DNA of 64,000 nt from Mytilus californianus (Eukaryota), in NCBI RefSeq assembly GCF_021869535.1, contig NW_026262582.1:47864001-47928000 (forward strand), given 5' to 3'. Below, one piece after another: positions 1-59,470 of this stretch. How positions within the stretch are numbered: the first letter of the stretch is position 1; each line of letters begins with the position of its first letter. The notes below the pieces were generated by a model. It did not search any database, was not told the DNA's origin, and saw nothing but the letters and a program-made list of their open reading frames with translations. A program made the position numbers and the translations under genes.

Positions 1-3000
1 ACAACCGCCATTGCATCTACAACTGATGCTTCGTCTTTAAGAACTTCTTCATATACAACCAATGCTACACCCTCAACGACTACTTCATCTTCAACCGATG
101 ATACACCTAAAATCACTACAACATCTACAACCGATGCTACCCTTACAACCACTACTGCATCTACTACCAATACTAAGCCTACAATCACTACTTCACCTAC
201 AACCGATGTTACGCCTACAATCACTACTGCATCTACAACCGATGCTACGCTTTCAACCACTATTGCATCTACAACCGGTGCTCTGCCTACAATCACTATC
301 GAATTTACAACGGATGCCACGTCTACGATTACTACTTCACCTACAAATGATCTAACGCCTACTAATACAAGTGCACCTACAAACAATGCTTTACCTACAA
401 CCACTGCTGCATTTACAAACGCTGTTACGCCCACCATCGCTACTTCATCAAATACCGAGGATACACCTACAACCACTAGTGCATCTAAAATCGGGGCGAC
501 GCCTACAACCACTACTTCATCCACAACCGGTGCTCCGCCTACAACAACTACTTCATCTACAACCAATGTAACGTCTACAATTACTACTGAATCTACATCC
601 GATGGTATGCCCATAACAACATCTTCAGCTACAATCGACGCTATCTCTACAATCACTGCTTTACCGATAACCAATATTGCATCTACAACCGATGCTACGA
701 ATACAATCACTACCAAATCTAAAACCGATGCTAAGCCTACAACCACTGATTCGTCTACAATCACAACTGAATATACAACGAATGCTACGCATACAACCGC
801 TACCGAATCGACAACCGATGCTCTGTCTTCAATTACTACTGCATCTACTACCGATACTATGCCTACAATCACTACTTCACCTACAACCGATGTTACGCCA
901 ACAATCTCTACTGCATCTACAACCGATGCTATGCTTACAACCACTACTGCATCTACAACCGATGTTCTGCCTACAATCACTATCGAATTTACAACGGATG
1001 CTACGTCTACGATCACTACTTCTCCTACCAACGATCTAACGCCTACAACTACCAGTGCACCTACAACCAATACTTTACCTACAATCACTACTTCATTAAC
1101 AAACGCTGTTACGCCCACAATCGCTACTTCATCAAATATCGAGGATACACCTACAACCACTAGTGCATCTAAAATCTGGGCAACGCCTACAACAACTACT
1201 TCATCCACAACCGTTGCTCCGCTTACAACAACTACTTCACCTTCAACCAATGTAACGTCTACAATTACTACTGAATCTACATCCGATAGTATGCCTACAA
1301 CTACTGATTCGTCTACAATAACAACTGATTCTACAACGAATGCTACGCAAACAATCGACACCGAATCTACAACTGATGCTATGCCTACAATTACTACTGC
1401 ATCTACTACCGATACTAAGTCTACAATCACTACTTCACCTACAACCGATGTTACGCCTACAATCACTACTGCATCTACAGCCGATGCTACGCTTACAACC
1501 ACTACTGCATCTACAACCAATGCTACGCATACACTCACTACCGAATATGTTACCAATGCTAAGCCTACAACCACTCACTTGCCTTCAACCGATTCTACAA
1601 ATGCAATCACTACCGAATCTACAACAGATGCAATTCTAACAGTCACTAATGCACCTACAAACGGTGATACGGCTACAACCACTATTTTATTTACATCCAA
1701 ATCTACGCCATCAACCCCAATTGCAACTACAACCGAGGTTACGCATACAACCGCCATCGCATCTACAACTGATGCTTCGTCTTTAAGAACTTCTTCATAT
1801 ACAACCAATGCTACACCCTTAACGACTACTTCATCTTCAACCGATGATACACCTAAAATCACTACAACATCTACAACCGATGCTACCCTTACAACCACTA
1901 CTGCATCTACTACCAATACTAAGCCTACAATCACTACTTCACCTACAACCGATGTTACGCCTACAATCACTACTGCATCTACAACCGATGCTACGCTTTC
2001 TACCACTATTGCATCTACAACCGGTGCTCCGCCTACAACAACTACTTCATCTACAACCAATGTAACGTCTACAATTACTACTGAATCTACATCCGATGGT
2101 ATGCCCATAACAACATCTTCAGCTACAATCGACGCTACCTCTACAATCACTGCTTTACCGATAACCAATATTGCATCTACAACCGATGCTACGATTACAA
2201 TCACTACCAAATCTAAAACCGATGCTAAGCCTACAACCACTGATTCGTCTACAATCACAACTGAATTTACAACGAATGCTACGCATACAACCGCTACCGA
2301 ATCTACAACCGATGCTATGTCTTCAATTACTACTGCATCTACTACCGATACTATGCCTACAATCACTACTTCACCTACAACCGATGTTACGCCAACAATC
2401 TCTACTGCATCTACAACCGATGCTACGCTTACAACCACTACTGCATCTACAACCGGTGTTCTGCCTACAATCACTATCGAATTTACAACGGATGCTACGT
2501 CTACGATCACTACTTCACCTACAAACGATCTAACGCCTACAACTACCAGTGCACCTACAACCAATACTTTACCTACAATCACTACTGCATTTACAAACGC
2601 TGTTACGCCCACCATCGCTACTTCATCAAATATCGAGGATACACCTACAACCACCAGTGCATCTAAAATCGGGGCAACGCCTACAACAACTACTTCATCC
2701 ACAACCGGTGCTCCGCCTACAACAACTACTTCATCTACAACCAATGTAACGTCTACAATTACTACTGAATCTACATCCGATGGTATGCCTACAACTACTG
2801 ATTCGTCTACAATAACAACTGAATCTGCAACGAATGCTACGCACACAATCGACACCAAATTTACAACGGATGCTATGCCTACAATTACTACTGCATCTAC
2901 TACCGATACTAAGCCTACAATCACTACTTCACCTACAACCGATGTTACGCCTACAATCACTACTGCATCTACAGCCGATGCTACGCATACAACCACTACT

Positions 3001-4558
3001 GCATCTACAACCAATGCTACGCATACACTCACTACCGAATCTACAACCGATGCTATGCCTTCAATTACTACTGCGTCTACTACCGATACTAAGCCTACAA
3101 TCACTACTTCACCGACAATCGATGTTACGCCTACAATCAGTACTGCATCTACAGCCGATGCTACGCTTACAACCACTACTGCATCTACAACCAATGCTAC
3201 GCATACACTCACTACCGAATTTGTTACCGATGCTAAGCCTACAACCACTCACTTGCCTTCAACCGATTCTACAAATGCAATCACTACCGAATCTACAACA
3301 GATGCAATTCTAACAGCCACTAATGCACCTACAAACGTAGATACGGCTACAACCACTATTTTATTTACGTCCAAACCTACGCTATCAACCCCAATTGCAA
3401 CTACAACCGACATTACGCCTACAACCGCCATTGCATCTACAACTGATGCTTCGACTTTAAGAACTTCTTCATATACAACCAATGCTACACCCTCAACGAC
3501 TACTTCATCTTCAACCGATGATACACCTAAAATCACTACAACATCTACAACTGATGCTACCCTTACAACCACTACTGCATCTATTACCAATACTAAGCCT
3601 ACAATCACCACTTCACCTACAACCGATGGTACGCCTACAATCACTATTGCATCTACAACCGGTGCTCTGCCTACAATCACTATCGAATTTACAACGGATG
3701 CTACGTCTACGATCACTACTTCACCTACAAACGATCTAACGCCTACTACTACAGGTGCACCTACAACCAATGCTTTACCTACAACCACTACTGCATTTAC
3801 AAACGCTGTTACGCCCACCATCGCTATTTCATCAAATACCGAGGATACACCTACAACCACTACTGCATCTACAACCAATGCTACGCATACACTCACTACC
3901 GAATCTATTACCGATGCTAAGCCTACAACCACTGACTTGCCTACAACCGATTCTACAAATGCAATCACTACCGAATCTACAACAGATGCAATGCTAACAG
4001 TCACTAATTCACCTACAAACGATGATACGGCTACGACCACTATTTTATTTACATCCAAATCTACGCCATCAACCCCAATTGCAACTACAACCGAGGTTAC
4101 GCCTACAACGCCTATAATCACTACTGCATCTACAACCAATGCTACGCTTACAACCACTACTACAACAACAACTTCTCCTACAACTATTACTTCTCCTACA
4201 ACAAATACTTCTTCCACAACTTCTACTTCTCCAACAACAACTACTTCTCCCACAACTTCTACTTCTCCAACAACAACTACTTCTCCCACAACTTTTACTT
4301 CTCCAACAACAACTACTTCTCCAACAACAACTACTTCTCCCACAACTTCTTCTTCTCCAACAACAACTACTTCTCCCACAACTTCTACTTCTCCAACAAC
4401 AACTACCTCTCCTACAACAACTACTTCTCCAACAACCACTATTACACCTACAACGGTTTTCCCACCTACAGCCGCTACTAAACCGAGAACAACTTCTACT
4501 TCTACAACCAGTTTACACACGTCAACAATGGTCCCTGGGAAAGTGCCAGTAAATACAG
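1..4558 (+). CDS. Membrane mucin, giant Thr/Ser/Pro-rich (PTS) exon; 5' end lies outside the window
   Basis: Frame 1 is open from base 1 (TTAIASTTDA...) through ORF 607..4575. It is very Thr-rich with long internal repeats. Probable phase-1 donor ACAG|GTTTGC at 4558/4559, which joins in frame to the downstream exons. Confidence 0.9.
4159..4440 (+). repeat. Coding tandem repeat of SPTTTT/SPTTST hexapeptides (18-nt unit)
   Basis: Repeated acttctccaacaacaact-like units at the end of the PTS exon. Confidence 0.9.
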
Positions 4559-5164
4559 GTTTGCTCATATTGTAATTTAATGCATGTTGTATTTATTTTG
4601 GAATCCTAAACAAAATTTTGAAAAGAGAAAACACCTTTAAGTTACAAAATGCGGATTTTGAACAGCTTATTTTATAATTTGTCTTTTTGTTTTTCTTTTC
4701 CCACTCTCATCTTTTATTTGGCTTCACATTTCATTTCAACAAGCAAATATGACCATTTATAAATTATGTCAGAAAAATTTATGTTGGGGAAAATGAAAAT
4801 AATATTGTATATACTTCACTGGTTTAAGCTGTCACAGTTTGCCTTTTGTTTTTCAAAATACAGCAGTATGACACCTTTATATATGTGCACCAATGGGTGG
4901 TTGAAAATAGATTTATCATAGCAGAACTATTTTATATGAGATTTTAACAGTGAAGTAACATTAAGTAGAGTGACTTATACGTATTTATTTTTTGTTTACT
5001 TAAAATCTAATAGTTGTTCTGCGTATTTGTTCATTCATTTAAATTGTCCTTGAAATATACCGACTACTACGAGTTATTCGAATATTCCCATTTTCATATT
5101 ATTTATATGTTCGATTTGAACTTCTTGTTATCTCCTTAATTCCTTTAAGGAGTTAACGTTTCAG

Positions 5165-6195: not shown

Positions 6196-6530
6196 AAACA
6201 TGTTTAACCCCGCCACATTCTGTATGTGCCTGTCCAAAGTCAGCACCCTGTAATTCAGTGGGTGTCGTTTGTTGCTGTATATCATATATGTTTTGTTTGA
6301 ATTGTCTTACATTTTTCATTTCGAGGCCTTTTATAGCTTACTCTGCGATATGAGTTTTGCTCATTGTTGAAGGCCGTACGGTGACCTATAGCTGTTAACT
6401 TCTATGTCATTTTTGTCTCTGGTAAAGAGTTGTCTGATTGGCAATCATACCAAATCTTTTTATTTTTCGATAAGAAGATGTTGTTTGATTGCCTTGGAGA
6501 CAACAATACACGAGAGACCAAATGACGTGG
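6196..6530 (+). mobile_element. PLE 3'-terminal fragment plus a short inverted copy of the same terminus
   Basis: Ends ...gttgtctgattggcaatcataccaaatcttttt, then aagaagatgttgtttgattgcc... in the opposite orientation. The same terminus recurs across the window. Confidence 0.6.
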
Positions 6531-8063: not shown

Positions 8064-9588
8064 TACTGAGTGCCAATGAAAACGCAACACTTGTAAATTT
8101 CAAATATTTTAAAATATATAAATATTTTTTTTAAATGATTACCTATATCGGTTTGAAAATGAATCGTCAGACTTCTTTCGACAACTTTACGCTTGAATGA
8201 TTTTAGAAAAAAAAAGTTACGTGCTTACGTTACAGAAAAAGGGGGTGAGTCGAGTGCACCGCTATTTTTCGCACGAGTGATTTTTTCATTGTGTGTTTTG
8301 GAAAGCCTCGCTTAAGAATTTAACTTTCCCATCCTTTTTTGTAAGCCACTGCAATAAACTAAGGCGTAGATGCCAAGACTTTCAGACAACCAGAGACATG
8401 AAGTTTGGGGCATGGTGCAAGGAGGCATTTCAAGTCGTGAAATTGCACGCAGAATTCAGTGTTCAGCCTCAACAATTACCAGACTTATCCAAAGATTCAA
8501 TCAAACTGGGTCTTTGAATGATAGACCACGTCCCGGAAGACAGAGAGCAACTACTGCCCAACAGGACCGATACATTCGTCTTCAGCATCTGCGAGATCGG
8601 TTCCGTGCGGCTGTCCAAACGGCACGGGAGACTGTCGGCGTCCATAGGAGACAAATTGGAGCAAACACGGTAAGACGCCGTTTGCGCAGCAGTGGATTAA
8701 GGGCACGGAGGCCTTTCCGTGGTAACATTCTGACAGCAGTACGACGCCAAAATCGCTTTAGATGGACACAACAGCGTCAGAGATGGTCACACAGGCAATG
8801 GACAACTGTCTTATGGACGGACGAATCAAGATTCCATCTTCGTCGTAGTGATGGACGAACTCGTGTGTGGAGACGAAGAGGAGAACGCTATGCAGATTCG
8901 TGTATCCAAGAGACAGATCGTTGAGGTGGTGGTAGTGTCATGGTATGGGGAGGAATATCATTCAACCATAAAACTCCGCTCATCACTATCAATGGCAATT
9001 TAAACGCTCAACGCTACATTGACGAAGTTTTACGGCCGACCGTTATACCGTTTATGGCTAGGCATCAAGATGTTAATCTTTTTCAGCAAGATAACGCTCG
9101 TGCACACTCCGCACGACTCACAACTGCGTTTATCAACAACAACCATGTTCAGACATTACCATGGCCAGCCTTTTCGCCGGATTTGAGTCCAATTGAACAC
9201 TTATGGGATCAAATTGGACAAGCCGTAAGACGACGACAGCCACCACCAGTTACGCTGCGCCAACTCGAAATTGCATTGCGGAAAAAATGGACAAACATTC
9301 CACAACACCGTATCCGACGTCTGGTCAGGTCAATGCCACGTCGTTGTAGAGCTTGCGTTGCAGCACGCGGTGGACACATTCGTTATAGAGACTGTGAGTT
9401 AGTGAACTGTAGCGTTGTGATGCATAACCGTATTGCATTCGAATCGTGGCAGTTGAACATTTTTGTTTGACTTTTATCTTTAGATAAACCCTTTAACTGT
9501 CATTAACAATTACTATATAGAAAATATTATTTTGTATAAAAATTTTATTTCTAAAAAACTTAGTGTTGCGTTTTCATGGCACTCAGTA
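8064..9588 (+). mobile_element. Tc1/mariner DNA transposon (DD34E), full length
   Basis: About 27-bp TIRs tactgagtgcca(a)tgaaaacgcaacact / agtgttgcgttttcatggcactcagta, flanked by TA on both sides, with an internal transposase. Confidence 0.93.
8370..9470 (+). pseudogene. Tc1 transposase with one in-frame stop
   Basis: Paired-like HTH N-terminus; WTDESRF, QQDNARAH and SPDLSPIEHLW with 34 residues between D and E. TGA at 8922-8924 within DR*GGGSVMVWG; both ORFs are in the same frame. Confidence 0.9.
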
Positions 9589-18858: not shown

Positions 18859-20043
18859 TCTTTTTCTAGAATCAACGCTTTCTAAATCTGTCGCTGAAAT
18901 GGATTCACCAAATTATATTCAATTGTTTCCTTTGTATGTCTAATTTCATTAAGTTTGAATTAGCTAATTTACTGATTTCTGTTCACTAATGGAATTAATT
19001 TAAAAACTTACCTTTAATTTTTGTTACTTTTATATGCCTTCACTGGGAAGCGAACCCGTCCTTGAAATCTGTTATGTGTGACTAACATCAACATATCGAC
19101 GAAACCTCTCGGCTACCAATTGGTTACAATTTACATGTCTATTTTATATATATAAATGAACATATGATATACATCGGTACAACGGACACACAGGGCTTGT
19201 ACCTTTATATATACATAATAGGCAATCGTATAGTATCAGTTGGTAGCCGCGAGGTAACATGGTTAAGATCAATGAGTTAAAGAGTCAAGTTAAAGGTAGG
19301 GACTTGTAGGTTTAGGTTCGAATCCCTGTCCCTATTCTTTAGTTTTTCTGTTTTTTTTTTTTTCTTATTTTGTATGTAATTGTGGATATTTTTGTAATAA
19401 TAGTGAGTTTTACCGTTTATTTTTGGATTATTATTGGCTATTTCACATATTTGAAACGAAAATGATTACATTCAATTTGTCCATTTTTGTTTTATAAATA
19501 TAGTAAGATTTCATCTGTTTTAGTACATAATTTTACAAATGTTTATTCGCAAATTCCTATGCGAGTAAATCGTGATGTGCCTAGAATTAAGCTTCTTGCT
19601 AGAAATTTTTGGTAACATACTTATTATATATACTTTTATATATGCTCTTTGGTCAGGTTGTTGTCTCTTTGACACATTCCCCATTTCCATTCTCAATTTT
19701 ATTAGAAATAAGTTCGAATATGTCAAGTTATTTTGTAAACACAGGTAATATTTAGATGCCTGATAATTTAAAGGCAGACGTGTCGTGTTATATTTGTATT
19801 TTTCTAACCAATTAGTTGTGATCTTAAATTTAGTAATGCATCGTTGAACATGATACCATGGTTATTCATACTTACTTACAATTCCTTCTAATTAAGAAAA
19901 GGCTTTAATTTTGAAAAGACATTAACACAATAGTTCAAGTTATAGATACAGTGGATAAGCGTTGATTCATGAAAAACAAACCATTCGCCCTCCGGGCTCA
20001 TAGTTTCTTTTTCAAGAATCAACGCTTATTCATTGTATCTATA
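18859..20043. mobile_element. Second putative non-autonomous element with the same single-arm plus hairpin layout
   Basis: Hairpin at 19941-20043 (gatacagtggataagcgttgattc / gaatcaacgcttattcattgtatc). Its right arm is repeated, 21/22 identical, at 18859-18880. Confidence 0.5.
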
Positions 20044-26305: not shown

Positions 26306-29300
26306 AAAAAAATCCCGTTCCTAATATAAATTCAACTGCCGCTAATCATGCTAATAGAAATTCACCTTCAAAATTAAGCACATTTCACAATTGTGTTAAA
26401 GGAGGCAATGCCTCTGCAGCTAGATTGTTCAACAAAAACGCTCGTGGATATCCACAAATATTTCCGCGCAATGTCATAAAATGACAACCCTGTTTCAGAT
26501 TATCTTCAGATAATACAGTTCGGTCATCAGTGAACGGAAGAACTTTATATCTCTCCTTTTCATATGAAATTACTTGTAATACCCAAAGCCTCATATATCT
26601 TGTTACATGAACAAAACTGAAATGTAGTATTCAATATGTAAGGCAAACTGGACGTGAATTTTTCAAACGAACACAAGAATATCTATACCGCTTCCGCAGA
26701 CCTAAGAAATTCAAAAGCTTAGTTTACCAAAATTTACACAAACACAAACACAATATTAAATCTATCAAATCCCAACCACTTCAAACAGTCAATAAGCAAC
26801 CAACACAATCACATAAACAGTTTGAAGATTCTCGTAAAATTTGCGAACTGTCTTGGATCAAACGACTACAGACAGCGTATCCCCTAGGTCTAAATGACAA
26901 TATCATGGGCCAAGGGAACATATCTAACACTTCCTTTATTGATACCATGACTATTGTTGATAAACGACAACGTAATCACATGTCTCATGGCAATCGCATT
27001 AACCGCAATCAACGAAATAAACATCGTTCTAATTTTACACTTGATGATTTTTTATCTATATTTAAAAACAATGGTAGACATCAATTATTATGTAAACTGG
27101 GTCAAATGTCAATTAGTAAATCATATAATATTTAAAACGAGTGTGATGCAATATCGTTTTTTAGTCCAAAATATGAGTGTACACGGATTATTACAACTTT
27201 TTGTCACCATAGACTCTTCCCTCAAAGTGACAAACCTGAAGATCATTAAAAGTATTTTACAAAAATAAAATACATTAATAGAGGTATTGATTTTATTGGT
27301 TTGTCTAGTATTTTTCATGATTCTACCGTTCAAAACTTTATATCTCCATATTTTGATAACATTGAGGCACCTATAATTTCTTATTCGTATAAAAAACAGA
27401 GTAGAAGTTTAATTTTTAATTATACGTCAGTTACATCAGACGTCAGTATAGAAAATAATGCTCCTTCAACATGGGACTGTGAAACGTGGCCATGTAATTA
27501 CAGGGGACCTCAACATCGTTCAGGACCGAGATTTTATAAACTTTCTGAAAAAGGGACCAAGATATCGTCCACCGTTGAAAATAAATTGGGAAGAGTGTCG
27601 TCAGGTTATTACAGATGCTCTTTCATCCTGTTGTTAAAAATGGTGTAAACGAATGAAATCTGACAAAAAGTCAATTGATTCCTATTTAAATAAATGTAGG
27701 AATATTGTAGATATTCGTATATCACATTTCGAAAATAGTTTAGAAATAAATAAAAGAGTAAGTAATACGCCCATTCCTATGATTAAAAACAACATTCAAG
27801 TACTATCAAAACGTTTTATGTTCGTACCGGCCGACAAAGCAGCCAACAATGTGGTGGTGGTTTGATATAAATACTACACGGAAGTCCTTAAGAATGAAAA
27901 TATACATTCAACTACATTCAAGGCCGTACGCTCAACAGAGAGTCATATAGTAAATAATCAAGTCACTACCACAGCTCAACTTAAGGACTTCTCGGAACAT
28001 TTGAAGGTCCCCACTACATGTACTACATAAAAAACCCGTAAAATATCGTTTCATCTCGGCCTCTAGTAAGTGTTCTACCACCAATCTTTCGGTGCTTTTA
28101 ACGAGTTCCTTACCTTCTATCAAAGAACTTATCGTTGATTTTTGTAATAAAACATGAAAACAGTGGAATTAAACCATTTTTGGAGTGTAAAAAGTTCTTT
28201 GGATGTTTTAGATAAATTACGTGCTTTTGATGGTCCTTTTGAATCGGTTAAAAATTTTGAATATTCCACTCTTTATACTACACTTCCACACAATCTTATC
28301 AAATAAAAGTTTTCATATCTAATTGAGTGGTCGTTTGATAAATCTGGTTACACATTTATTTGCTGCAACTTATATAAAGACTTTTTCTCTAATGAGAAAG
28401 GTAAATATGCTAGATATACTTACTGGAGGTGTGATGAGCTAATTAAAGCACTAAATGTTCTCCTTGATAACATTTATGTACGTTTCGGCAATAAAGCTGA
28501 TCGACATTTTGTAGGTATTCCTATGGGCATCAACTGCCCCTTTAATAGCAGACTTGTTCCTTTACTGTTATGAATCACAGTTTATGGCCAAACTCAGTAA
28601 AGAACCGTCTAAATTCCATTTAATAGATAAATTTACCAACACTTACCGTTATCTTGATGATATTTTTTCGTTAAATAATCAAGAATTCTCTAACTATACT
28701 GCTGAAATTTACCCAAAGGAACTTATTTTAAATAAATCTAATATTAACAGCAATAATTGTCCTTTCCTAGATTTAGATATTTGAGTATTACACCAGGAAC
28801 TCTTCACAAAAAATTACGACAAAAGGGACGATTTGTCTTTCCCTATTGGTAATTTCCATTTTTGGACGGTGATGTTCCTTTGCACCGTCCTACGGTGTTT
28901 ATATATCCCAACTCGTTCGATATGCCCGTGTATTAAGTGACGTTTTGGGTTTTAATGAGCTTAATATATGTATTACTAGTAAATTATTGAGTCAGGGATT
29001 TTGTTACCACAAATGACTTAAAACCTTTACTAATTTCTTTCATTGATACAAAGATTTAGTCTGCAAATTTGGCTGTACCTGTAGAAAACTTGTTTCAAAC
29101 GGAATAGCAAAACCTTAATTTTACGGTGATGTTGTAAATCGAGCCCGGAAATTTAGATACGATCCGGGTAAACTTATCAATCCTTCAAATAAACTTATTC
29201 TAAAAGATTACCTTTTCAACACTGTAATTAAATCTTTGAATATTGATTTTATTGGTATAAATATTCATTTTGTTATCAGTAAGTTAAAACCATACTAAAT

Positions 29301-29512
29301 ATTACACATTTGTACTTTCACTGTACTACAATCTGTCAATACCTTTAATAGTTTGGCATTTCACAAGGTCATGTTTTTTCTCTGACTGTTAATGACGTCT
29401 TGACTAAATTCATTGTATGTTGGATGTGTACTGGTTGATATTTTAGTCTTAGATACATGATTTTTTTCATTAGTTGTTATTGCTTTGAACTAGCTGTCAG
29501 TAACTGCGAGTA
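26306..29512 (+). mobile_element. Naiad-type PLE (N-terminal GIY-YIG, CxC linker, RT), decayed, family 1
   Basis: IYLVT*TKLKCSIQYVRQT, ELSWIKRLQTAYPLGLND, GHVITGDL, FVPADKAANN, GIPMG and RYLDD in this order. ORF ends TAA at 29296-29298. Confidence 0.9.
29368..29462 (+). ncRNA. SECIS-like element, partly degraded, in the family 1 Naiad 3' UTR
   Basis: ATGA at 29392, AAA at 29406, TGAT at 29436, outer helix gact/agtc and tcatg/catga. Helix II is imperfect. Confidence 0.6.
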
Positions 29513-40563: not shown

Positions 40564-41661
40564 TTTCACGTTACACGTGGCAAGGGTTCTGATGCTAAAC
40601 GAGAGACGTCTATATATTTTTTTTTTCTTTTTTCGTTTGTTGTGCTCACTCGACAAAAAAACTTCCTATTATAACTCGCATCTGTTATTTTACATTGCCA
40701 ATATGCAGAAAAGCTGATGATTGGTTCCTTAACTCAAAGTTTTGGCCCTAGAAATCTGAAAATTTGTAACCGCGGTAATGGTTGATGAACACATATGGTA
40801 CAATGTCAAATTATTTCCGTTTAAAAGATTTTCACCATTTGCATCATCAGTGATGTATATGTGACATCAGGAAAGTAGGTGAATTTCATTAAAATATGAT
40901 GTTGTTGCATAAGGAGTGATAACAAATGATAGTTTTCTGAATAATTTAAAGTGGCGTCATCCCACGCAGACCAAATATTTTGCTGAAACGTTTTTTATGT
41001 ACTATATATTTTCATTTTCAACAAATATTTCAATTGCCGAGGGGTAGTGTTCCATAGGAAATCATGAAAAAAGGTCAAAAAATGGACTTATTTGAAATAT
41101 ATTCCTACTTCAGGCTATTAAAGTTGTAAATATGAAGCAGATATATTAATAAAATTGAGAATGGAAATGGGGAATGTGTCAAAGAGACAACAACCCGACC
41201 ATAGAGCAGACAACAGCCGAAGGCCACCAATGGGTCCTCAATGCAGCGAGAAACTCCCGCACCCGGAGGCGTCCTTCAGCTGGCCCCTAAACAAATATGT
41301 ATACTAGTTCAGTGATAATGGACGTTATACTAAACTCCAAATTATACACAAGAAATTAAAATTGAAAATGATACAAGACTAACAAAGGCGAGAGGCTCCT
41401 GACTTGGGACAGGCACAAAAATGCGGCGGGGTTAAACATGTTTTTGAGATCTCAACCCTCCCCCTAAACCTGTAGCCAATGTAGAAAAAACCAACGCACA
41501 ACAATACACACAGTAAAACTCAGTTTAAGAGAAGTCCGAGTCCGATGTCAGAATAGGAAACAAAAAAAAATAAACAAAATGACAATAATACATAAATAAC
41601 AACAGACTAGTGGCAGATACTGACATGCCATCTCCAGACCTCAATTAAACTGATTTAAAGA

Positions 41662-41750
41662 TTATGTCTTCATCATATGAATATCAGGCACAATCCCTTC
41701 TGTTCGGGGTTTAGTATTATACCATCATAAAATATATGAGAAGAACATAA
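41662..41750 (-). ncRNA. Type II SECIS element (canonical)
   Basis: A-UGAU GGUAUAAU ACU-AAA-CCCC gaacagaa GGG AUUGUGCC UGAU: G.A quartet, 8-bp helix II, AAA bulge, mini-helix. Helix I ucauau/auauga. About 62 nt after the RT stop at 41790-41792. Confidence 0.85.
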
Positions 41751-44041
41751 CCCGTGTTATGCCAACAACTGGTTTTAGAATAAATATGTTTAATTCCGAT
41801 GCAAAGTCCCTATAAGTGAATCAATATTAAAGCAAAAATATGCAATCTTTAATGACCTGACGACAGTATCGTTTGTTTAAAGGTTTTGTTAGCTTTTGAG
41901 GTGAATACTGACATTTTTGTGCTTTGTAAAGAATATTACCATAACAGATTGGATGTGAAATACCCGATCGTATAAGATGTCTGCATGTTGAGTTATATTT
42001 ACGAATGATGTCCTTATACGGATGCAATTTAGTTAATGTTTTGACTAGTTTATGATATCGAAAACCCTGGTGTAATAATTTTTCAGTAATACATAAATTT
42101 CTCTCGCTAAAATATAATACGTTGTTACATACACGAGCGAATCGTACAAGTTGAGATATATAAACACCATAAGATGGGGACAAGGGAACGTCACCATCTA
42201 AAAATGGATAATTAACGATAGGAAATGAAAAATAATCTCTTTTATCATAAATTTTTGTATTAAGCTTCCCGTTAATGATATAGATATCAAGATTGAGGAA
42301 AGGACAGTGGTCATTGTTAGTATTAGCTTTATTTAAAGTAAGTTCAACAGGATAAATTTCTTCAGTATACATACTGAAGTCGTCATTATTGAGAGCCAAT
42401 ATATCATCCAAATATCTAAAAGTATTATTAAATTTTTGTATCAGATGTTGTTTCGATGGGTCTTTGCTGATTTTAGTCATAAATTGTAACTCATAACAAT
42501 ACAAAAACAGGTCCGCAATAAGTGGTGCACAGTTAGTCCCCATTGGAATTCCGATAACTTGACGATATACGGAATCTCCAAAGCGAACAAAAATGTTATC
42601 AAGTAAAAATTCAAGGGCAGATATGTTATCAAAGCATGTCCAATTGACATAGTTCTTTTGTTTGTTGCTACTAAAAAATGACCTAAAGAGTTTGAACATA
42701 ATATGTATTCGCATTCCGACCTTTTAAATGCCCATTTAATTAGGTGTGTGAATTTTTTCTTAATAAGAATATGAGGCAAAGTGGTATATAGGGTAGAAAA
42801 ATCAAAACTTTGATCAGATTCAAAATCACCAATATATGCATGCAATTTATCAAGTACTTCCAACGAGTTTTTGACACTCCAAAAGTAGTTAATTCCACTA
42901 TTTTCAAAGGCCTTATTTGAACAATTTATTATTAGATTTTTGATTGTACCAAGTGTACTAGTAAGTAAAATAGACAATTTAGTAGTGGAACAAAGACTTG
43001 AAGACGAAATAAATCTATATTTGTAAGGTGATTTGTGTAGCTTTGGAAGCCAGTACATAGTTGGGACTTTCATTGTATTTGGTTCTGCTTGTAAAGAAGT
43101 AGCTAATAGTTTATGTTTGTTACAGATATCGTTTTCTGAAAATGAAGTCAGTTGGAATGTTGGTGAATTCGTGATTTCCTTTTGCAGAACCTCAATGTAA
43201 AATTTACGTCAAACTATATAAGATATTATTAGCAGCTTTATCAGCCGGGACAAAACAAATTCCTCGGCTAGTTCTTTTAGTTTATGTTTGATACGAGAAA
43301 TAGGATTTGTATGGTTGTTGTTAAGAGTAAAATGTTCTTTAAAATGTTGTATACGTATATCAACTATCTTCATTACTGAATTAAAAAAAGAGTCCAAAGA
43401 TTTTTTGTCAACTTTTTCCCGTTTTATCCATTTCAAACAGTAAGCACGAAGTGAGTCGTGGATGATATTACTACACTCATTCCAATTAATAATTGACAGG
43501 GGACGATATTTAGGTCCTTTCCTGAGGAATGATTTTAAATGGAAATGGGGAATGTGTCAACGAGACAACAACCCGACCATAGAGCAGACAACAGCCGAAG
43601 GCCACCAATGGGTCCTCAATGCAGCGAGAAACTCCCGCACCCGGAGGCGTCTTTCAGCTGGCCTCTAAACAAATATGTATACTAGTTCAGTGATAATGGA
43701 CGTCATACTAAACTCCAAATTATACACAAGAAATTAAAAATTAAAAATGATACAAGACTAACAAAGGCCAGAGGCTCCTGACTTGGGACAGGTGCAAAAA
43801 TGCGGCGGGGTTAAACACGTTTTTTGAGATCTCAACCCTCCCCCTATACCTCTAGCCAATGTAGAAAAAACAAACGCACAACAGTACGCACAGTAAAACT
43901 CAGTTAAAGAGAAGTCCGAGTCCGATGTCAGAATAGGAAACAAAAGAAAATAAACAAAATGACAATAATACATAAATAACAACAGACTACTAGCAGTTAC
44001 TGACATGCCAGCTCCAGACCTTAATTAAACTGATTGAAAGA

Positions 44042-44130
44042 TTATGTCTTCATCATATGAATATCAGGCACAATCCCTCTTGTTAGGGGTTTAGTATTAT
44101 ACAATCATAAAATATATGAGAAGAACATAA
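44042..44130 (-). ncRNA. Type II SECIS element, duplicate copy
   Basis: Same fold as 41662-41750, with one mismatch at the base of helix II. Lies after the stop at 44170-44172. Confidence 0.78.
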
Positions 44131-46144
44131 CCCGTGGCATGCCAACAACTGGTTTTAGAATAAATATGTTTAATTCCGATGCAAAGACCCTATAAGTGAA
44201 TCAATATTAAAGCCAAAATATGCAATCTTTAATGACCTGACAACAGTATCGTAACTATATCCCTTCCTAATAAGTATGTTTAAAGGTTTTGTTAGCTTCT
44301 GAGGTGAATACTGACATTTTTGTGCTTTGTAAAGAATATTACCATAACAGATTGGATGTGAAATACCCGATCGTATAAGATGTCTGCATGTTGAGTTATA
44401 TTTACGAATGATGTCCTTATACCGATGATAAAATATAGTATATGTTTTGACTTGTTTATGATATCGAAAACCCTGGTGTAATAATTTTTCAGTAATACAT
44501 AAATTTCTCTCGCTAAAATCTAATACGCTGTTACAGACACGAGCGAATCGTACAAGTTGAGATATATAAACTAAGCTTTTTTTGTTATACTTTCAAACAA
44601 TACATGTAGTAATACATACATACATTAGATTTTTTTTTTATACTTTCAAACAATACATGTAGTAATACATACATACATTAGATTTCCTCAAACAATTGAA
44701 AAATACACGTTAAAAGTGCCGTTTATTTGGTTATTGCCTTTATTCCGCACAACGCATGTTAATCCATAAAGCATCAACTCATATTCAGTATACGTTTACT
44801 TTGAAACAAAATTAGTTTTAATTTGCTTTGAACTAGCTTTCAGTAACTGTGAGTACTCTTAGGTGGGTATTTGGTGTCTTTAGTCTATTTGTTAGTTGTT
44901 TATTGTGTTTTGTGTCGATCTGATGAGTCAAACCTACCTGCACTTTGTTTTATGTTGTGTTGTTAACCACTGTCCCCGGTTACGGAAGGGCTTAGTTCTC
45001 ACAAACTTGTTGTTATTCGCAGTCTGTTATACATGTTTACGTTTAAATTGATTTATACTTAAATATGATCTTGTTTTCTTGTTTGAATTGTTGCCGGGGC
45101 CTTTTATTGCTATTATACTGTATGAACTTTGTTCAATGTTGAAGGCTGTACTGTATCCTATAGCTGTTTACGACCACGCCATTAAGTTTTAGGCGAATAG
45201 TTGCCTCATTGACAGTCATGTCAGATCTTCTAGTTTTTATATTTTCTAATGGTAAAAGTCGAATTCAGTCAGTGGTAATATAAAAAGTATTAACCATATA
45301 TCAGATTAACAACATAACAGTTGGCAAGTCAAATATCTTCATCTGTTATCATATCAATTTTAATTATTGTTCTATATTGTAAATTCTCAATCTGGAGCTG
45401 ATTATTGTTTGATTGTCAATTCAAGATCTTTCATGTTTTCAAAAGCGTGCTTAGATAGTGGGTTTTTTTAATCACCAAAATGACTTCGGAAGTTTGTAGT
45501 TGCTTATGGTTGTGTTCTCTTATAAATTTTCGAATCACAATTTGTTAGCAAGGTCAAAGTGGTATGAGGTATTTTAAGTAAAGAGATAAACTAATTGTAT
45601 GCTCATTCTCAAAGAACCCCGCAATGTTAAGTAATCCACTAAAATGGACATGACATCGGACAAAGCGTTCTATACGATAGGACTTAACTTATAAGCGATA
45701 TTGATTTTCTCCAAGATTCGTTACCTCAGTCAAATTTGCTTGGTTCCAATGTTACCAAGATTTCAATAAAAGAACAAGATTCCAAATAAGTGATTGAACC
45801 AAACAACAGTGAGAAGGAATAGTTTATTTGTCAGATATTGAAAGTTTTCTAATCTTATACACGTTACAACTTCAGTTATGCTATTATCAATTTTCACCTA
45901 TTTATTATCCAGTTATGCTATTATCAATTTACATCCATTTATTGTCCATCAAACGGCGAAGTAGGTCATTGTCTTCGGGAATCTGTTAGCTAGTAGTTAC
46001 TGCGGTCAGATTCTTGTTATTACAGAATATTACAATCAGAGTTATATCGACTCTCAATGTATGGTACTGGTTGGCGGTAACAAGTTCCAAAACATTCTTT
46101 ATGAAATGAATGTTTTTGAACTTGTTTAGTGGCGGACTTTGTAA

Positions 46145-50804: not shown

Positions 50805-53800
50805 GAATTGTTTTATATTTGTCATTTCGGGGCCTTTTTATATCTGACTATGCGGTATGGGCTTTGCTCATTGTTGAAGGCCGTACGGTGACCTCTACTT
50901 GTAAATATCTGTGTCATTTTGTGTACTTTTTTTGCAGATTTGTCTCATTGGCAATCATACCGCATCTTCCTTTTAATATAAACGTTTATTGTCCGGTAAA
51001 ATCACATTTGTACTGTAATTGCACGAAGGAAGAAATGAAATCAATTGTGAAAACACCAGTCATCCACTTTGTAATTTATTCATTATAATAACTTATAAAT
51101 AGGAGGTGTTAGGTTTTTTTGATCTCAGGGTTTTGTGACATTTTTACCAAGAAAAACGAATCATGTTTTCATTAATTTAAAAGGAACTAACATTTTTCTT
51201 TAAAACTTGAGAATCAGGATAGATTTTTAAAATTTTATCTCGCATAATTGTGCATAAAATCCGTGTTCTTGTTTTAGTAATTCAATCTGATAAATGGAGT
51301 AAAGACTTGTTTCTTGATTTCTATGTGTTTAAATAATACTGCATGTTTAATTCGTCAGTTTATTCTTTATCTATTATATTAATTTATTTTGCAATAATGT
51401 TATGTTTTTTTTCATATTCAAAAGTACAATCTGGGTTTTTTTTTTCATTCTCAAAAGATATAACAAACAGTCGCTCAAAACGATTTTATGTTGATATGTA
51501 ATGTAATTAATACTCGGATCGTTAACAACTCAATATATTATTTCTTCAATATTGCGCAGACAATTAATATGTCCATTAATGATAAATAAGAATAACGCTT
51601 GACCTAGTATTAGAACACCAACTTTTCGATCAACAAAAACATTAAAAAAAAACAACATCACGTAAGAACTAAATTTAAGATGCCGGTTTGAATTAATGAA
51701 CGATTGCACAAAAAAGCAAAGCATGCAAACAAACATCTTCAGATTATTAATTACGAGACAAGCAAGTAGCCATACTTTAAAACAGTTGTCTCATTGGCAA
51801 TTATACCCCATCTTTTCATTTTTATATTCTTTAGAGATCATTGGTATCTGTAAACAGATTCAATTCACCACACATTCTGTTTTTTTTTTGGCAGAACTAG
51901 AAATAGAATGAATTAATTGAAAATAGTTCTGATATATCGTGATATTGTCGATCATCTTATGTGTTCATTCTCTTATATAGGTTTCTTTAAATAGAAGGGG
52001 TGGGATTTGACGTTTTGATAACATATTTATCAATCAATATACGTTCTCATTATCTACATTATTAAACATTTCTGACAAAAGGGTATGTTTATCAGCTGTT
52101 TCAACTTTAGTAAACGGTAAGATACTTCCGAAAGGACTTCTACTGTATATCGTAAAGGTAGGTGGAACTAAAATGCGAAGTTGTCAAATTAGATTATAAG
52201 CAGATAACATTTTATTTTATTTTTCTCATTTTTATCGTTTAGTTTGTTAGCGGACAATGTACGTCAACATTAGTGCAAGGACACTTGGATACTTATTATC
52301 TGGTTTGATAAGTCATAACATACTGATAGTATATACCGATCAAAAACAGCTCGTTTTTATAGAATATGACTCAAAATTGGAAATTTGGCTTGAGAAAAAG
52401 TAATTGACTTTTGTAAGATTATAGATTAAACTTTATTTTGAATTCTTATTGTAATTTATCGTTTGATCTTTAAATTTACATTAGTCTAATATCAAAGTAT
52501 ATGCACCCTCTAATTGTATTAAAACGTTGAAAATTGTTTAACATTAATGTATAAAATCTCATGTTTTTGTTGACGTGTTCGTGTTACGATTTTCCAAATC
52601 GTCGATTCCAAAATGATTGGTTTCGGTATTGCCTCATCAAAATAGGTCTGTTACACTGCGTTAGTTATTGTTTGTCTATTGAAGAATTTAATAATGGTTT
52701 TAAGTAATTTACAGTAACGAAATCCCTGACTAAAAAAGTTACCAGTAATATATAGATTACGTTCATTATAAACCAAAGAAACGTGCATAGAGAACGAGTT
52801 GTGATATATAAACATCGTAAGATGGTGCAAAAGGAATATTACTATCCACAAATGGAAAATTAACAATAGCGAAAGAAAAATCGTCCCCTTTGTCCTAAAT
52901 TTTTCTGTAGAGTTTCCCGTGTAAAACTGAAATATATAAATCTCAGAAAGGCATGTTATTACCGTTATTATGTTAATTTCTCCTTACTATCATTACCATC
53001 AGTTATTTCGTCATTTGATATTTGCCCTACTGAAAATAGTTGTATTTTTACATCCTATTTACTATTTCTTTTGTTAGATATGTGAAATATGGTAGTACAC
53101 AAAACCTTTATTAAAGATAGCAAAACTGTAACATGTGTAATAACGTTTGGATATGTTATAAGAAATGCATATTGTTGTTGTTGGGATGTACAAGTACTTG
53201 GCCACGTCCACTGTGTGTTTTTGTTAGATGAATTTCTACATGTATCCATCTGATGAGTTGAGCCTTTTTCTACTATTTTTTATTTGTTCTTACGTTGTAC
53301 GGTATAACCACTGTCCAAGGTTAGGTGAGGGTTGAGCGCTCGTTAACATGTTAAACCCCACCACTTTCTGAATTTGCATGTCCCAAGTCAAGAGCCTGTA
53401 ATTCAGTGGTTGTTGTTTGTTTCTGTGTTACAAATTTGTTTTTCTTTCATAACTTTGTATATAAATTAGGCCGTTTGTTTACTCGATTGAATTGTTTTAT
53501 ATTTGTCATTTCGGGGCTTTTTATATCTGACTATGCGGTATGGGCTTTGCTCATTGTTGAAGGCCGTACGGTGACCTCTACTTGTTAATATCTGTGTCAT
53601 TTTGTGTACTTTTTTTACAGATTTGTCTCATTGGCAATCATACCGCATCATCTTTTTTATATAAACGTTTATTGTCCAGTAAAATCACATTTGTACTGTA
53701 ATTGCACGAAGCAAGAAATGAAATCAATTGTGAAAACACCAGTCATCCACTTTGTAATTAATTCATTATAATAACTTATAAATAGGAGGTGTTAGGTTTT

Positions 53801-54063: not shown

Positions 54064-56657
54064 TTGACCACATGTAACACATTTATGTGTCTGAGCGTTT
54101 TTAATAAATCTTGTAAACTCTTGTTATCTTGTATAAAATCTTAAAGGAATATTTGTGATTTTACTTTTTAAGATAGACAAAGGTATAGAAAACCCCGATT
54201 GACAACAAACACAATTACTATCAAATGATGTTTAGCAAAATGCATTTTAATCGGGATAAATAATGACTTGACAGAGATTATTATTTTAAGCCTTGGAGCA
54301 CTTTTCCTTGAAACATCGTATCATCCGGTTTGAAAAGAATGACCTATCGTTCTGCATGAAAATAACTCCATATAAGTTACTATATTCCTGAAACTACACA
54401 TTATTGTCATGAATAAACTCACCATAACTTGACTTTTTTTCAGTTGTTAGAAAAAAATGAATTTTGGTTTCAACCATAGATTTTAGAATATATAGCAAAA
54501 ACAAAAGATGATTTTTTTATTTTTACACACATGTATACACATATATATAGCTGCATACAAAACGTGCATTCAAATTAATATCATTCATAAAAAACTGTAA
54601 AATGAATAATATCATTTTAGGTTTTAAACAAACATATGGATTTCATATTATTACTACGTACATATAAACTTTTAATTTATCAAAATGATAAATAGTTTAT
54701 CAATGCTATCAATCATCACAGTAAGGATCCTTCAAGTTTTGAGACCTATTTGATCTCAAACCTGATTGTTCAAATAATTTGAACGTCATAAAAAAATATG
54801 TACGGCATGACAGATCCGCAATCAAATTCTCATGACATAACATGTTTTTCAAAACAGTATGCGTAATATTGAAATATATTGAAACATCACTTAGGTAAAC
54901 CAAATCCTAATGTTTGCTTCTATATACATTACGTTCAAAAATATACCTATAATTGTAAGGCAATGTTGTGACAGTTAAGAGATAAGCATTGAGCTTCGTA
55001 CTTTAATACTTAAATAGTGAAAAGATTTAAATAAGTTGAAAATGCTCTTCAACAATGTTTTATATAAAAAAAACTAACATTTAAAGCTTTATACGGATCA
55101 GTAGGCATGCGACTCAGGGCACTAGCTGAATTCATGAGCGAAGTCCGACCCCGTAACACATATGTTATTTTGCAAACGTTCTTTTATATCTGCCACTAGT
55201 ATATAAATGTATCCTGCAATGTAAATATATGGATTATTATATTTTTATTTAAGAATTAATTAAATACTTCTTTAATACTTTTATTGGGGAGTAAAATCTT
55301 TGACCGAAGCACATTTTGATTGAAGCGCGAAAGGGCTTCATACTAAACGTGTGCGCACGATCAACTCTTTTACAATCATATAAAGTTATAAAAAGATGTA
55401 GTCAATTCTTACAATTACATTCTTATGATACAGCCATGAATATAAGAGGTTTACACAACTTTTTTTTTCTATTCATTGTTTTAAAATTGTCGTGCTTAGC
55501 ACTTACACTCAAAGCTGTTATATTCTACACGTTAATAAAAGGTGATATTTTGGTGCCTTGCAATTGTTGTCAGCCAAACAAATAATAAATCTATAAGGAT
55601 GTTAATAAAACATACATGACAATACTGCGTTGAAAACCTCTTCATGGCCTTGGGCTGTTTTCTACTCTTTGGTTGGAATGTTGTCTCTTTGAGACATGCC
55701 CCATTTCTATTCTCAATTTGATGTAATGAAGTATTTTAATGTTATTTCTTTTTTAAGCTTTGTATTACATGTATTAACAAAACGTTCGTTTGTCAAAGAA
55801 AACCAGCATACCTGTGGTGTATTGATGAGGGCGTTATAAATAAGACTTAGATACACACATTGGAAATAATATCTCTCTCGAACATATTTTGATCAAAATC
55901 GTTTTCTGGCATTTGTTCAACAACTATTCAACAATGTTCACAAAACACGAAAACAATATTTACTTTATATTTACATGTATGCTTTAGTATACAATTCAAG
56001 TATCGTGTATTTCATCAGAATAAAATAAATTATTTTTTATAGACAGTATAGTCAAAACAAGTACTTTTTTTTAAGTTACTTATATAGGTAATTTTTGTTT
56101 TTGAAAATTATTAAATTAATCAACAGAGTTATCTTAAATTTCAACAGAAGCATGGACTAAATGTAGTTCTTTATAAATTTTCACACCATTATATCATAAA
56201 ATAAAAATTTATTAAATTTGAGAGGAATATAGAGAGAAACGGTTACTTTAAAAAATGATTACAAAAATATTACATGAATAAGTAATGTTATACATCTTTG
56301 AAAGAATTAGAAATTGCAATTATTTAAGGAACATATGTACATGTTTTGTGTTACAAATTATAAATAACTTCAAGTCTTAATTAAATCACAAGTTTCTATC
56401 TATTTATATCTGTTTACCTGCAAGATTTTAGATGAAAAAAAATATTTGAGTAGTCCAAAGAGACCATTGTTTGACCTAGAAGCGTAGGAAATTGATTTTT
56501 ATAACTATCCTTCAAATGTTTAAAAGATGCGTATAAGTAATCAGTAAAATAAATATTTTCATTTCACAACAATTTTAAGATACATCTGCTTAAACCTTTG
56601 ACCAATCCCCAAACAGTAGTAATATTTATCAATTTGTGGATTTTGTGGATCTTTCCT

Positions 56658-58254: not shown

Positions 58255-58900
58255 ATATAAAAAAGAAGATGTGGTATGATTGCCAATGAGACAACTCTCC
58301 ACAAGAGACCAAATGACACAGAAATTAACAACTGTAGGTCACCGTACGGCCTTCAACAATGAGCAAAGCCCATACCGCATAGTCAGCTATAAAAGGCCCC
58401 GAAATCACAAATGTAGAACAATTCAAACGAGAAAACTAACGGCCTAATTAATGTACACAAAAATGAACGAAAAACAAATATGTAACATAGATATAAGAAG
58501 ATGTGGTATGAGTGCCAATGAGACAACTCTCCATCCAAGTCAAAATTTAAAAAAGTAAACCATTATAGGTCACAGTACGGTCTTCAACACGGAGCCTTGG
58601 CTCACACCGAACAGCAAGTTGGAAAGGGCCCCCAAAATTACTAGTGTAAAACCATTCAAACGGGAAAACCAACGGTCTAATCTATATAAAAAACGAGAAA
58701 CGAGAAACACTTATGAACCACATCAACAAACGACAACTACTGAACATCAGATTCCTGACTTAGGACAGGTGCAAACAAATGCAGCGGGTTTAAACGTTTT
58801 AATGGTACCAAACCTTCACCCTTTTTCTGAAACAATAGTGTAACATCACAACATAGAAAGACACACTATAAAATATCAACTGGAATAGCTTAACTCAATC
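58255..58900 (-). mobile_element. Two tandem PLE 3'-terminal fragments
   Basis: aagaagatgtggtatgattgccaatgagacaactctcc at about 58263 and a variant at about 58495. Confidence 0.7.
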
Positions 58901-59385: not shown

Positions 59386-59470
59386 TCATGCATCAGAGAC
59401 TAAAATCAACTAAAACACATCCCAGGGATTTAGTATTTTAACGTCATGGACAGTCAAAGAAGACATGACT
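59386..59470 (-). ncRNA. Type II SECIS element in an ORF-less PLE 3' fragment (third sequence family)
   Basis: A-UGAC GUUAAAAUAC U-AA-AUCC cug GGAU GUGUUUUAGU UGAU: 10-bp helix II, all Watson-Crick or G.U, and helix I gacu/aguc. Confidence 0.8.

Follow-up and report, generated by a model that had tools for sequence, protein, structure and literature searches.

On the minus strand of positions 41149-44571 of the 64,000-nucleotide (nt) stretch of Mytilus californianus DNA analyzed here (the window) lies a dead remnant of a bivalve Penelope-like element (PLE), a retrotransposon of the Naiad clade. The interval consists of exactly two joined copies of one family (family 2; a second Naiad family, family 1, also occurs in the window), copy A followed head-to-tail by copy B. 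Copy B has a TGA in its reading frame, and both copies retain a hairpin resembling a selenocysteine (Sec) insertion sequence (SECIS) in the 3' untranslated region (UTR) (Table 1). With copy A directly upstream of copy B, the locus combines 5' truncation with a partial tandem, or pseudo-long terminal repeat, arrangement; head-to-tail partial duplication of this kind is the typical layout of PLEs (PMC8557442).

Natural contigs carrying relatives of the element (L001 to L017, of which L001 to L004 come from metagenomes) served as rulers for the window copies. Copy A is 93.2% identical to 41160-42165, the part that it shares with copy B, and 91.4% identical to positions 3105-4124 of L003; copy B aligns to positions 1734-4124 of L003, continuing to 116, at 91.7% identity. 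Copy B is without its first ~411 codons and hence without the GIY-YIG endonuclease and the CxC region. Compared with L003, its coding part has indels near 43251, 43219, 42700, 42684, 42025, and 41873, including two frame-breaking lesions (a 1-nt deletion near 42684 and a 23-nt deletion near 41873), and also carries three 3-nt indels. Because of these frameshifts and the loss of the endonuclease domain, copy B is nonfunctional and unable to make protein.

Table 1. Features of the family-2 Naiad pair (window coordinates)
Feature	Position	Strand	Remarks
Copy A, partial 3' copy of family-2 Naiad	43538..44571	-	~codon 869 to stop, plus 3' UTR and tail; upstream half of the pair
SECIS of copy A	44048..44125	-	First pair of helix II opened by a single G-to-U change
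TAA stop of copy A	44170..44172	-	C-terminal reading frame intact
Copy B, 5'-truncated family-2 Naiad	41149..43537	-	Begins at ~codon 412 of 1002; frameshifted
GxKF/Y motif, KGPKYRP	43500..43520	-	From translation
DKA motif (Naiad form of the PLE motif DKG)	43234..43242	-	Locally shifted frame, PADKAANN
In-frame TGA, probable inherited Sec codon	43209..43211	-	Eight codons after DKA (DKA+8)
YLDD, reverse transcriptase active-site motif, in FRYLDDIL	42403..42414	-	From translation
Position homologous to the family TAA stop in copy B	41790..41792	-	Out of frame owing to upstream lesions
SECIS of copy B	41668..41745	-	Helix I, AUGA/GA core, 10-bp helix II, AAA, weakened apical mini-stem
3' tail of the element, past the SECIS	41149..41667	-	Terminates at junction with unrelated DNA; pieces of the tail recur elsewhere in the window

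In three-frame translation, the frame that opens at LKSFLRKGPKYRP (~43537) reaches the core of the reverse transcriptase (RT) with a single interruption, the TGA at 43211-43209. Just upstream of this codon, FVPADKAANNI is read in another frame for ~32 nt because of two compensating indels relative to L003: one nucleotide is lost near 43251 and one is gained near 43219. A preliminary description of this DNA had reported the TGA, the otherwise uninterrupted frame from KGPKYRP to the RT core, and the pair of compensating indels just upstream, all of which we confirmed. It had placed KGPKYRP at ~43535; the motif is real, but it lies ~15 nt lower, at 43520-43500, the copy itself starting at ~43537. 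It had also assigned the TGA to an RT cysteine: the column is indeed a cysteine column, but it belongs to the region of the DKA motif, the RT core lying further downstream.

The same description held that the TGA occupies the position of a TGA (27863) in family 1, a family widely divergent from family 2, and both points were borne out. TGA 27863-27865 and TGA 43211-43209 share one column in a pairwise BLASTP comparison and in a 12-sequence MAFFT alignment with stops entered as X; the two families have 38% protein identity around the site, and their DNA can be aligned in the RT core only, at 68%. The family-1 copy (26306-29512, plus strand), with its TGA at DKA+8, has decayed too: it contains several TAA or TAG stops, its SECIS region is altered around 29390-29450, and, by eye, TGG stands in place of the CxC TGA of its relative L009.

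Judged by its motifs, the element carries the diagnostic set of the Naiads, a PLE clade with an N-terminal endonuclease described by Craig et al. in 2021 (PMC8557442). The GxKF/Y motif is diagnostic of PLEs and Naiads (PMC8557442), and PADKAANN, with DKA instead of DKG, was found in the window copy and in all relatives. The RT region has YLDD and IPMGTNCAPL motifs and thousands of homologues; its Pfam RVT_1 match is weak (14.3 bits versus a cutoff of 29.6). Upstream of the RT, full-length relatives (L002, L003, L009, and L014) have a finger of the form C-x4-U-x2-C followed by IIYLLT-U-..CGIQYVGETGR...WIKKLQTVYPLGLN, as well as a CCHH finger and a GIY-YIG core with PLGLN, and a CxC motif (SCNCS in L002) lies between endonuclease and RT. 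Pfam gave no GIY-YIG match on pieces of the window or of L002, which are split by TGA. No hammerhead ribozyme or other Rfam family was found at gathering thresholds across the whole window; the canonical hammerhead ribozyme is absent from Naiads (PMC8557442). One candidate relative, P0099/L015, was discarded as uninformative because it belongs to another, truncated RT family that lacks the DKA region.

A search for relatives with a 295-amino-acid (aa) RT piece as the query matched thousands of open reading frames (ORFs), and many of the matches listed were ~430-490 aa long and started shortly after the TGA position. The best match, P0001 (93% identity; a cluster of 133 members), is on L001, which has a single 592-codon frame whose sole interruption is a TGA at DKA+8; this contig, at 51x coverage, is probably a collapse of many copies. 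A DNA-level scan of metagenomes with the peptide upstream of the site, which favors neither TGA nor TGY, returned three contigs of ~4.1 kb (L002, L003, and L004). L002 and L003 each have a frame of 1002 codons, running from an ATG to a TAA, that is interrupted by TGA four times and by no other stop. The four codons stand at the second Cys of the CX4CxxC finger, the first Cys of the CCHH finger, the Cys before GIY-YIG, and DKA+8, and all four recur in L004. This frame contains no TAA or TAG, versus ~58 expected from composition (P ~1e-26), and the other two frames of intact relatives contain 49-128 stops. A search of viral contigs with a degenerate DNA pattern across the TGA site found nothing. 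The preliminary description had other Cys codons as ordinary TGY, which L002 bears out (25 TGY versus 4 TGA); its reading of the recoding as site-specific holds for a few sites, not for one, since three further TGA sites lie in the endonuclease domain of full-length elements.

The frame is under purifying selection on both sides of the DKA+8 TGA. Differences between L002 and L003 at codon positions 1, 2, and 3 number 31, 27, and 150, and the ratio of nonsynonymous to synonymous divergence (dN/dS) is 0.10 overall, 0.101 for the codons before the TGA (96-521), and 0.109 for those after it (521-1003). Across eight lineages (L002, L003, L006, L007, L008, L009, L010, and L014), compared over 14 codons on each side, synonymous differences in the flanks were 0.44-1.0 between families and 0.3 between L002 and L003, both of family 2, while nonsynonymous differences were 0-0.3; the TGA was invariant in all eight despite the saturation of flanking synonymous sites. 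In seven of the eight, the 24 conserved codons after the TGA (R-x-Y/F-Y-x-x-V-L...) include no Met, which argues against reinitiation; L010 has a Met at +9. The ~600 nt of 3' UTR and tail are 93.5% identical between L002 (3511-4094) and L003 (3507-4125) while synonymous sites differ by ~23% (dS 0.28 with Jukes-Cantor correction); thus, constraint on the tail seems to extend far past the SECIS, perhaps because the RT recognizes it.

All columns of the 12-sequence alignment that contain TGA are cysteine columns, and TGA and TGY interchange at Cys columns only; TAA and TAG are confined to decayed copies. The second finger Cys (column 56), the first CCHH Cys (column 87), and the Cys before GIY-YIG (column 98) are TGA in all six sequences that cover them. 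Two positions vary by lineage: the third finger Cys (column 59) is TGA in L010 only, and the first Cys of CxC (column 386) is TGA in L006, L008, and L009 and TGY in the others. DKA+8 (column 525) is TGA in 11 of 12 sequences and TGT in L005, an 11:1 ratio that is not an unbiased frequency, because the length filter through which most lineages were obtained (ORFs of 162-516 aa) favors frames cut by TGA.

A maximum-likelihood tree placed every TGA lineage, both window families among them, in a single clade (support 99/99); the two families thus inherited the TGA from a common Sec-type ancestor and did not acquire it independently. Since L005 nests within this clade, beside the family-1-like L009, its TGT is most simply secondary; we rejected it as the sign of a Cys-type ancestor because of this nesting and because L005 is decayed upstream. 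An exhaustive phmmer search with P0023 found that representatives at least 50% identical to it all begin after the TGA site, whereas continuous Naiads of 900-1100 aa are at most 44% identical, with 80 representatives having Cys at DKA+8. The preliminary description, arguing for ancestral, selected Sec recoding, had treated the two families as mutual support. The intact 1002-codon frames, purifying selection, and a SECIS with compensatory changes (below) support such recoding, and the TGA is indeed shared; as separate acquisitions, however, the families do not count, given their common descent.

The hairpin of copy B is much as that description had it, with an AUGA/UGAU quartet and an AAA bulge ~62 nt after the stop. 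We measured 61 nt from the homologous TAA (41792-41790) to AUGA (41728-41725), with UGAU on the 3' side and GGUAUAAU paired with AUUGUGCC in the helix. It gives a full-length match to Rfam SECIS_1 (RF00031) at 41674-41738 on the minus strand (25.9 bits, E 0.0037 in a 251-nt search), with the AAA exactly 12 nt after AUGA, equal to the Rfam consensus spacing, and has a fold z-score of -4.5 (106 nt). Copy A has the same fold (z-score -2.9), its AUGA (44108-44105) also starting 61 nt past the TAA. At the same 3' UTR place and strand, SECIS_1 scores 32.3 bits in L001 and L002, 30.9 in L003, and 28.8 in L006 (over the full 64 positions). A 3-bp apical mini-stem (CCC with GGG) gives the hairpin of intact copies a type II shape; the mini-stem is eroded by two G-to-A changes in both window copies.

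Every TGA lineage with an available 3' UTR has a SECIS in the corresponding place, beginning ~55-130 nt after the stop. A covariance model (R1), built here from five family-2 and L006 sequences, scored copy B at 101.8 bits, copy A at 99.6, L009 at 29.7, and L014 at 22.3; it recovered L007 weakly (17 bits, E ~1) and did not recover the SECIS-like hairpin of L010. The quartet is AUGA/UGAU in both window copies and in L001-L006, with the variant GUGA in L014 (in the R1 alignment and by eye); by eye only, L010 has GUGA and L007 has UUGA, neither sequence being in alignment A2. The L007 and L010 hairpins, read by eye and folding no better than shuffles, were not counted as evidence.

Covariation supports the hairpin. 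In the eight-sequence alignment obtained with R1, 86.6% of cells are paired, versus 31-48% when the 3' partners are slid by one to three columns, the alignment having been fitted to the model structure, which inflates pairing. Two-sided changes occur in 10 of 18 pairs (5 of 10 in helix II and 4 of 5 in helix I), and on none of five measures do more than 5 of 500 shuffles attain the observed value; on three measures, no shuffle does. Independent minimum-free-energy folds of L001, L006, L009, and L014 have the same architecture of helix I, internal loop, helix II, and AAA. The Cys-type Naiads L016 and L017, which have TGC at DKA+8 and no in-frame TGA, gave no SECIS_1 match at E ≤10 and no R1 match above 12 bits with filters off, the L017 3' UTR being only 132 nt long.

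Thus, in this family UGAs are fixed at Cys positions, the frame is selected across them, and a covarying SECIS-shaped hairpin is present that is missing from Cys-type relatives. We consider it highly probable that these are the parts of a Sec-coding Naiad family, with UGAs and SECIS in use in its working members. The window copy is a dead inheritor that received the fourth UGA together with the SECIS and has decayed since. In eukaryotes, SBP2 binds the AUGA/GA kink-turn of a SECIS, and eEFSec brings Sec-tRNA to the UGA. Working members of the family have a single ~1000-codon ORF (GIY-YIG endonuclease plus RT) with four UGAs at conserved Cys positions and one SECIS hairpin ~55-60 nt into the 3' UTR; by analogy, the hairpin would recruit SBP2 and eEFSec with Sec-tRNA, and ribosomes would insert Sec at each UGA to yield one full-length endonuclease-RT selenoprotein with four Sec residues. 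The window element went in as a head-to-tail pair of truncated copies, and, 5' truncation being frequent, every insertion also leaves a SECIS behind in the genome.

Several points weigh against a Sec-coding family. All Rfam SECIS_1 scores (25.9-32.3 bits) are under the gathering score of 35; at gathering, nothing passes in the whole window, and SECIS_1 is seen only with E-value thresholds on short stretches. The covariation alignment has the bias toward pairing given above. The unbiased DNA-level sample of family 2 amounts to three loci plus L001 and the window copy, collapsed or chimeric assembly may have affected the metagenome contigs, and the wider lineage sample comes mostly from the 162-516-aa ORFs, with their filter favoring TGA-cut frames. 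L005 has TGT at the site, and one SECIS must serve UGAs 1.5-2.9 kb upstream. For every Naiad family, Sec insertion is a prediction from sequence.

One alternative, improbable as we judge it, is that the UGAs are decoded or bypassed without Sec, either by near-cognate read-through (as Trp, Cys, or Arg) or by termination and reinitiation yielding separate endonuclease and RT products, with the hairpin serving another role, for example in recognition of the 3' end by the RT. The dN/dS values alone cannot distinguish Sec insertion from other read-through, and the unusual conservation of the whole 3' tail (93.5% identity versus a raw synonymous difference of 0.23, dS 0.28) implies other constraints on 3' sequences. 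However, all recoded positions are Cys columns at which Cys and TGA interchange, the signature of Cys/Sec exchange, and the hairpin has the SECIS hallmarks (the AUGA/GA quartet, the 12-nt spacing to AAA, and the full-length Rfam SECIS_1 match). Reinitiation would, in addition, have to work in seven of eight lineages without an AUG in the conserved codons right after the TGA and would be very inefficient with four to six stops per ORF.

Ordinary decay, in which the TGA arose from TGY by mutation of a pseudogene and the SECIS-like shape of the hairpin is fortuitous, fits the window copy, which is clearly dead (frameshifted and truncated), and the Rfam score below gathering; nevertheless, it is very unlikely and already contradicted, because intact copies keep TGA in open 1002-codon frames under purifying selection, the TGA is common to eight lineages, and the hairpin is conserved with compensatory changes and absent from Cys-type relatives. 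A variant genetic code, under which the organism of the intact contigs would read UGA as a sense codon that says nothing about Sec, draws on those contigs being metagenomic and has a next to negligible chance, since the same family occurs at 92% identity in the window's bivalve-like genome, TGA is used at a constant set of 4 Cys positions out of 29 where sense reassignment would scatter it, and a SECIS is present.

To our knowledge, Sec-encoding transposons have so far been known from one paper and four families, and our literature search found no later paper on Sec-encoding Naiads. Craig et al. described two such Naiads in clams and two in spiders, with UGA at DKA+8 (PMC8557442). Both the phenomenon and the exact DKA+8 position were thus published in 2021 (PMC8557442), and the Sec-type Naiads described here are a further case. 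The nearest counterparts are the clam elements Naiad_Scon and Naiad_Mmer, which are likewise bivalve PLEs with an N-terminal GIY-YIG domain, a 3' UTR SECIS, and 3-4 Sec per protein, and which share the UGAs at the Cys before GIY-YIG, at the first CCHH Cys (PMC8557442), and at DKA+8. Compared by published description, family 2 adds a UGA at the second Cys of the CX4CxxC finger, published for the spider Naiad_Sdum only (PMC8557442), and its sister lineages add one at the first Cys of CxC (L006, L008, and L009) or at the third finger Cys (L010). The published SECIS elements are grade A, type I, and 1-21 nt after the stop (PMC8557442); those described here have the apical mini-stem of the type II shape and lie ~55-130 nt after it. 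The spider elements Naiad_Sdum and Naiad_Smim also have UGAs at DKA+8, before GIY-YIG, and in the CX2-5CxxC finger, but they differ in their arthropod host and in having no CCHH-finger UGA; an independent Cys-to-Sec transition was inferred for them (PMC8557442).

Two other systems invite comparison. Cys-type Naiads (Penelope-2_CGi of oysters; L016 and L017) have the same domain order and motifs, with Cys at each UGA position, but no in-frame UGA or SECIS match (L016 and L017) and at most 44% identity to the Sec clade. Selenoprotein P resembles these Naiads in having multiple UGAs in one ORF decoded via a 3' UTR SECIS, and bivalve SelP is especially Sec rich (cited in PMC8557442). It is a host gene, however, whose Sec residues lie in a C-terminal Se-transport tail and which usually has two SECIS elements, whereas the Naiad family is a transposon with Sec predicted at putative metal-binding cysteines and one SECIS.

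New relative to published work are a whole clade of at least seven Sec lineages among bivalve Naiads; a fourth bivalve Sec site (the CX4CxxC finger) with lineage-specific Sec at CxC and at the third finger Cys; the type II-shaped SECIS 55-130 nt downstream of the stop; and the purifying selection across UGAs, SECIS covariation, and Cys-type negative controls. In practice, gene callers split Sec-Naiads at the UGAs, and transposable element annotators take the resulting ORFs for pseudogenes. Every truncated insertion carries a SECIS and is therefore a plausible source of SECIS elements for host genes. More speculatively, and in our estimate unlikely in full, this bivalve and marine metagenomes might hold a large, monophyletic, recently active radiation of Sec-Naiads (at least seven lineages, each with 4-6 UGAs and with Cys/Sec toggling at zinc-finger and CxC cysteines), whose 5'-truncated copies scatter working SECIS elements (for example, copy A and an orphan at 59391-59464), some being captured by host genes that thereby become selenoproteins. 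If so, the four Sec-Naiad families published so far would be only a small fraction of the whole. The orphan SECIS (minus strand) scores 34.6 bits with R1, is family-1-like and nearly identical to the L009 SECIS, and is just preceded by a poly-A-rich stretch.

Other repeats lie near or resemble the pair. Directly upstream of copy A, 44572-44700 (minus strand) holds two tandem ~60-nt units with (ATGT)n-like repeats and an A-run; this repeat-rich DNA may have been the insertion target of the copy A pair. Short fragments at 19643-19704, 55625-55727, 6196-6249, 53324-53397, and 58753-58800 are 77-97% identical to parts of the family-2 3' tail and are probably further truncated insertions or tails common to other repeat families. 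A 236-nt fragment on the plus strand (52685-52920; 68% identity to the family-2 RT region) is probably a third Naiad remnant. Downstream of the Naiad in L014, positions 3674-3777 form a near-perfect palindromic hairpin of ~100 nt, which has subthreshold matches to several microRNA precursor families on both strands and is probably an inverted repeat resembling a miniature inverted-repeat transposable element. Elsewhere on the plus strand of the window, 607-4575 is open for 1322 codons and encodes Thr/Ser/Pro-rich tandem repeats that look mucin-like by eye, and the adjacent ORFs of 184 and 176 aa at 8370-9470 resemble, by eye only, a split Tc1/mariner-type transposase.

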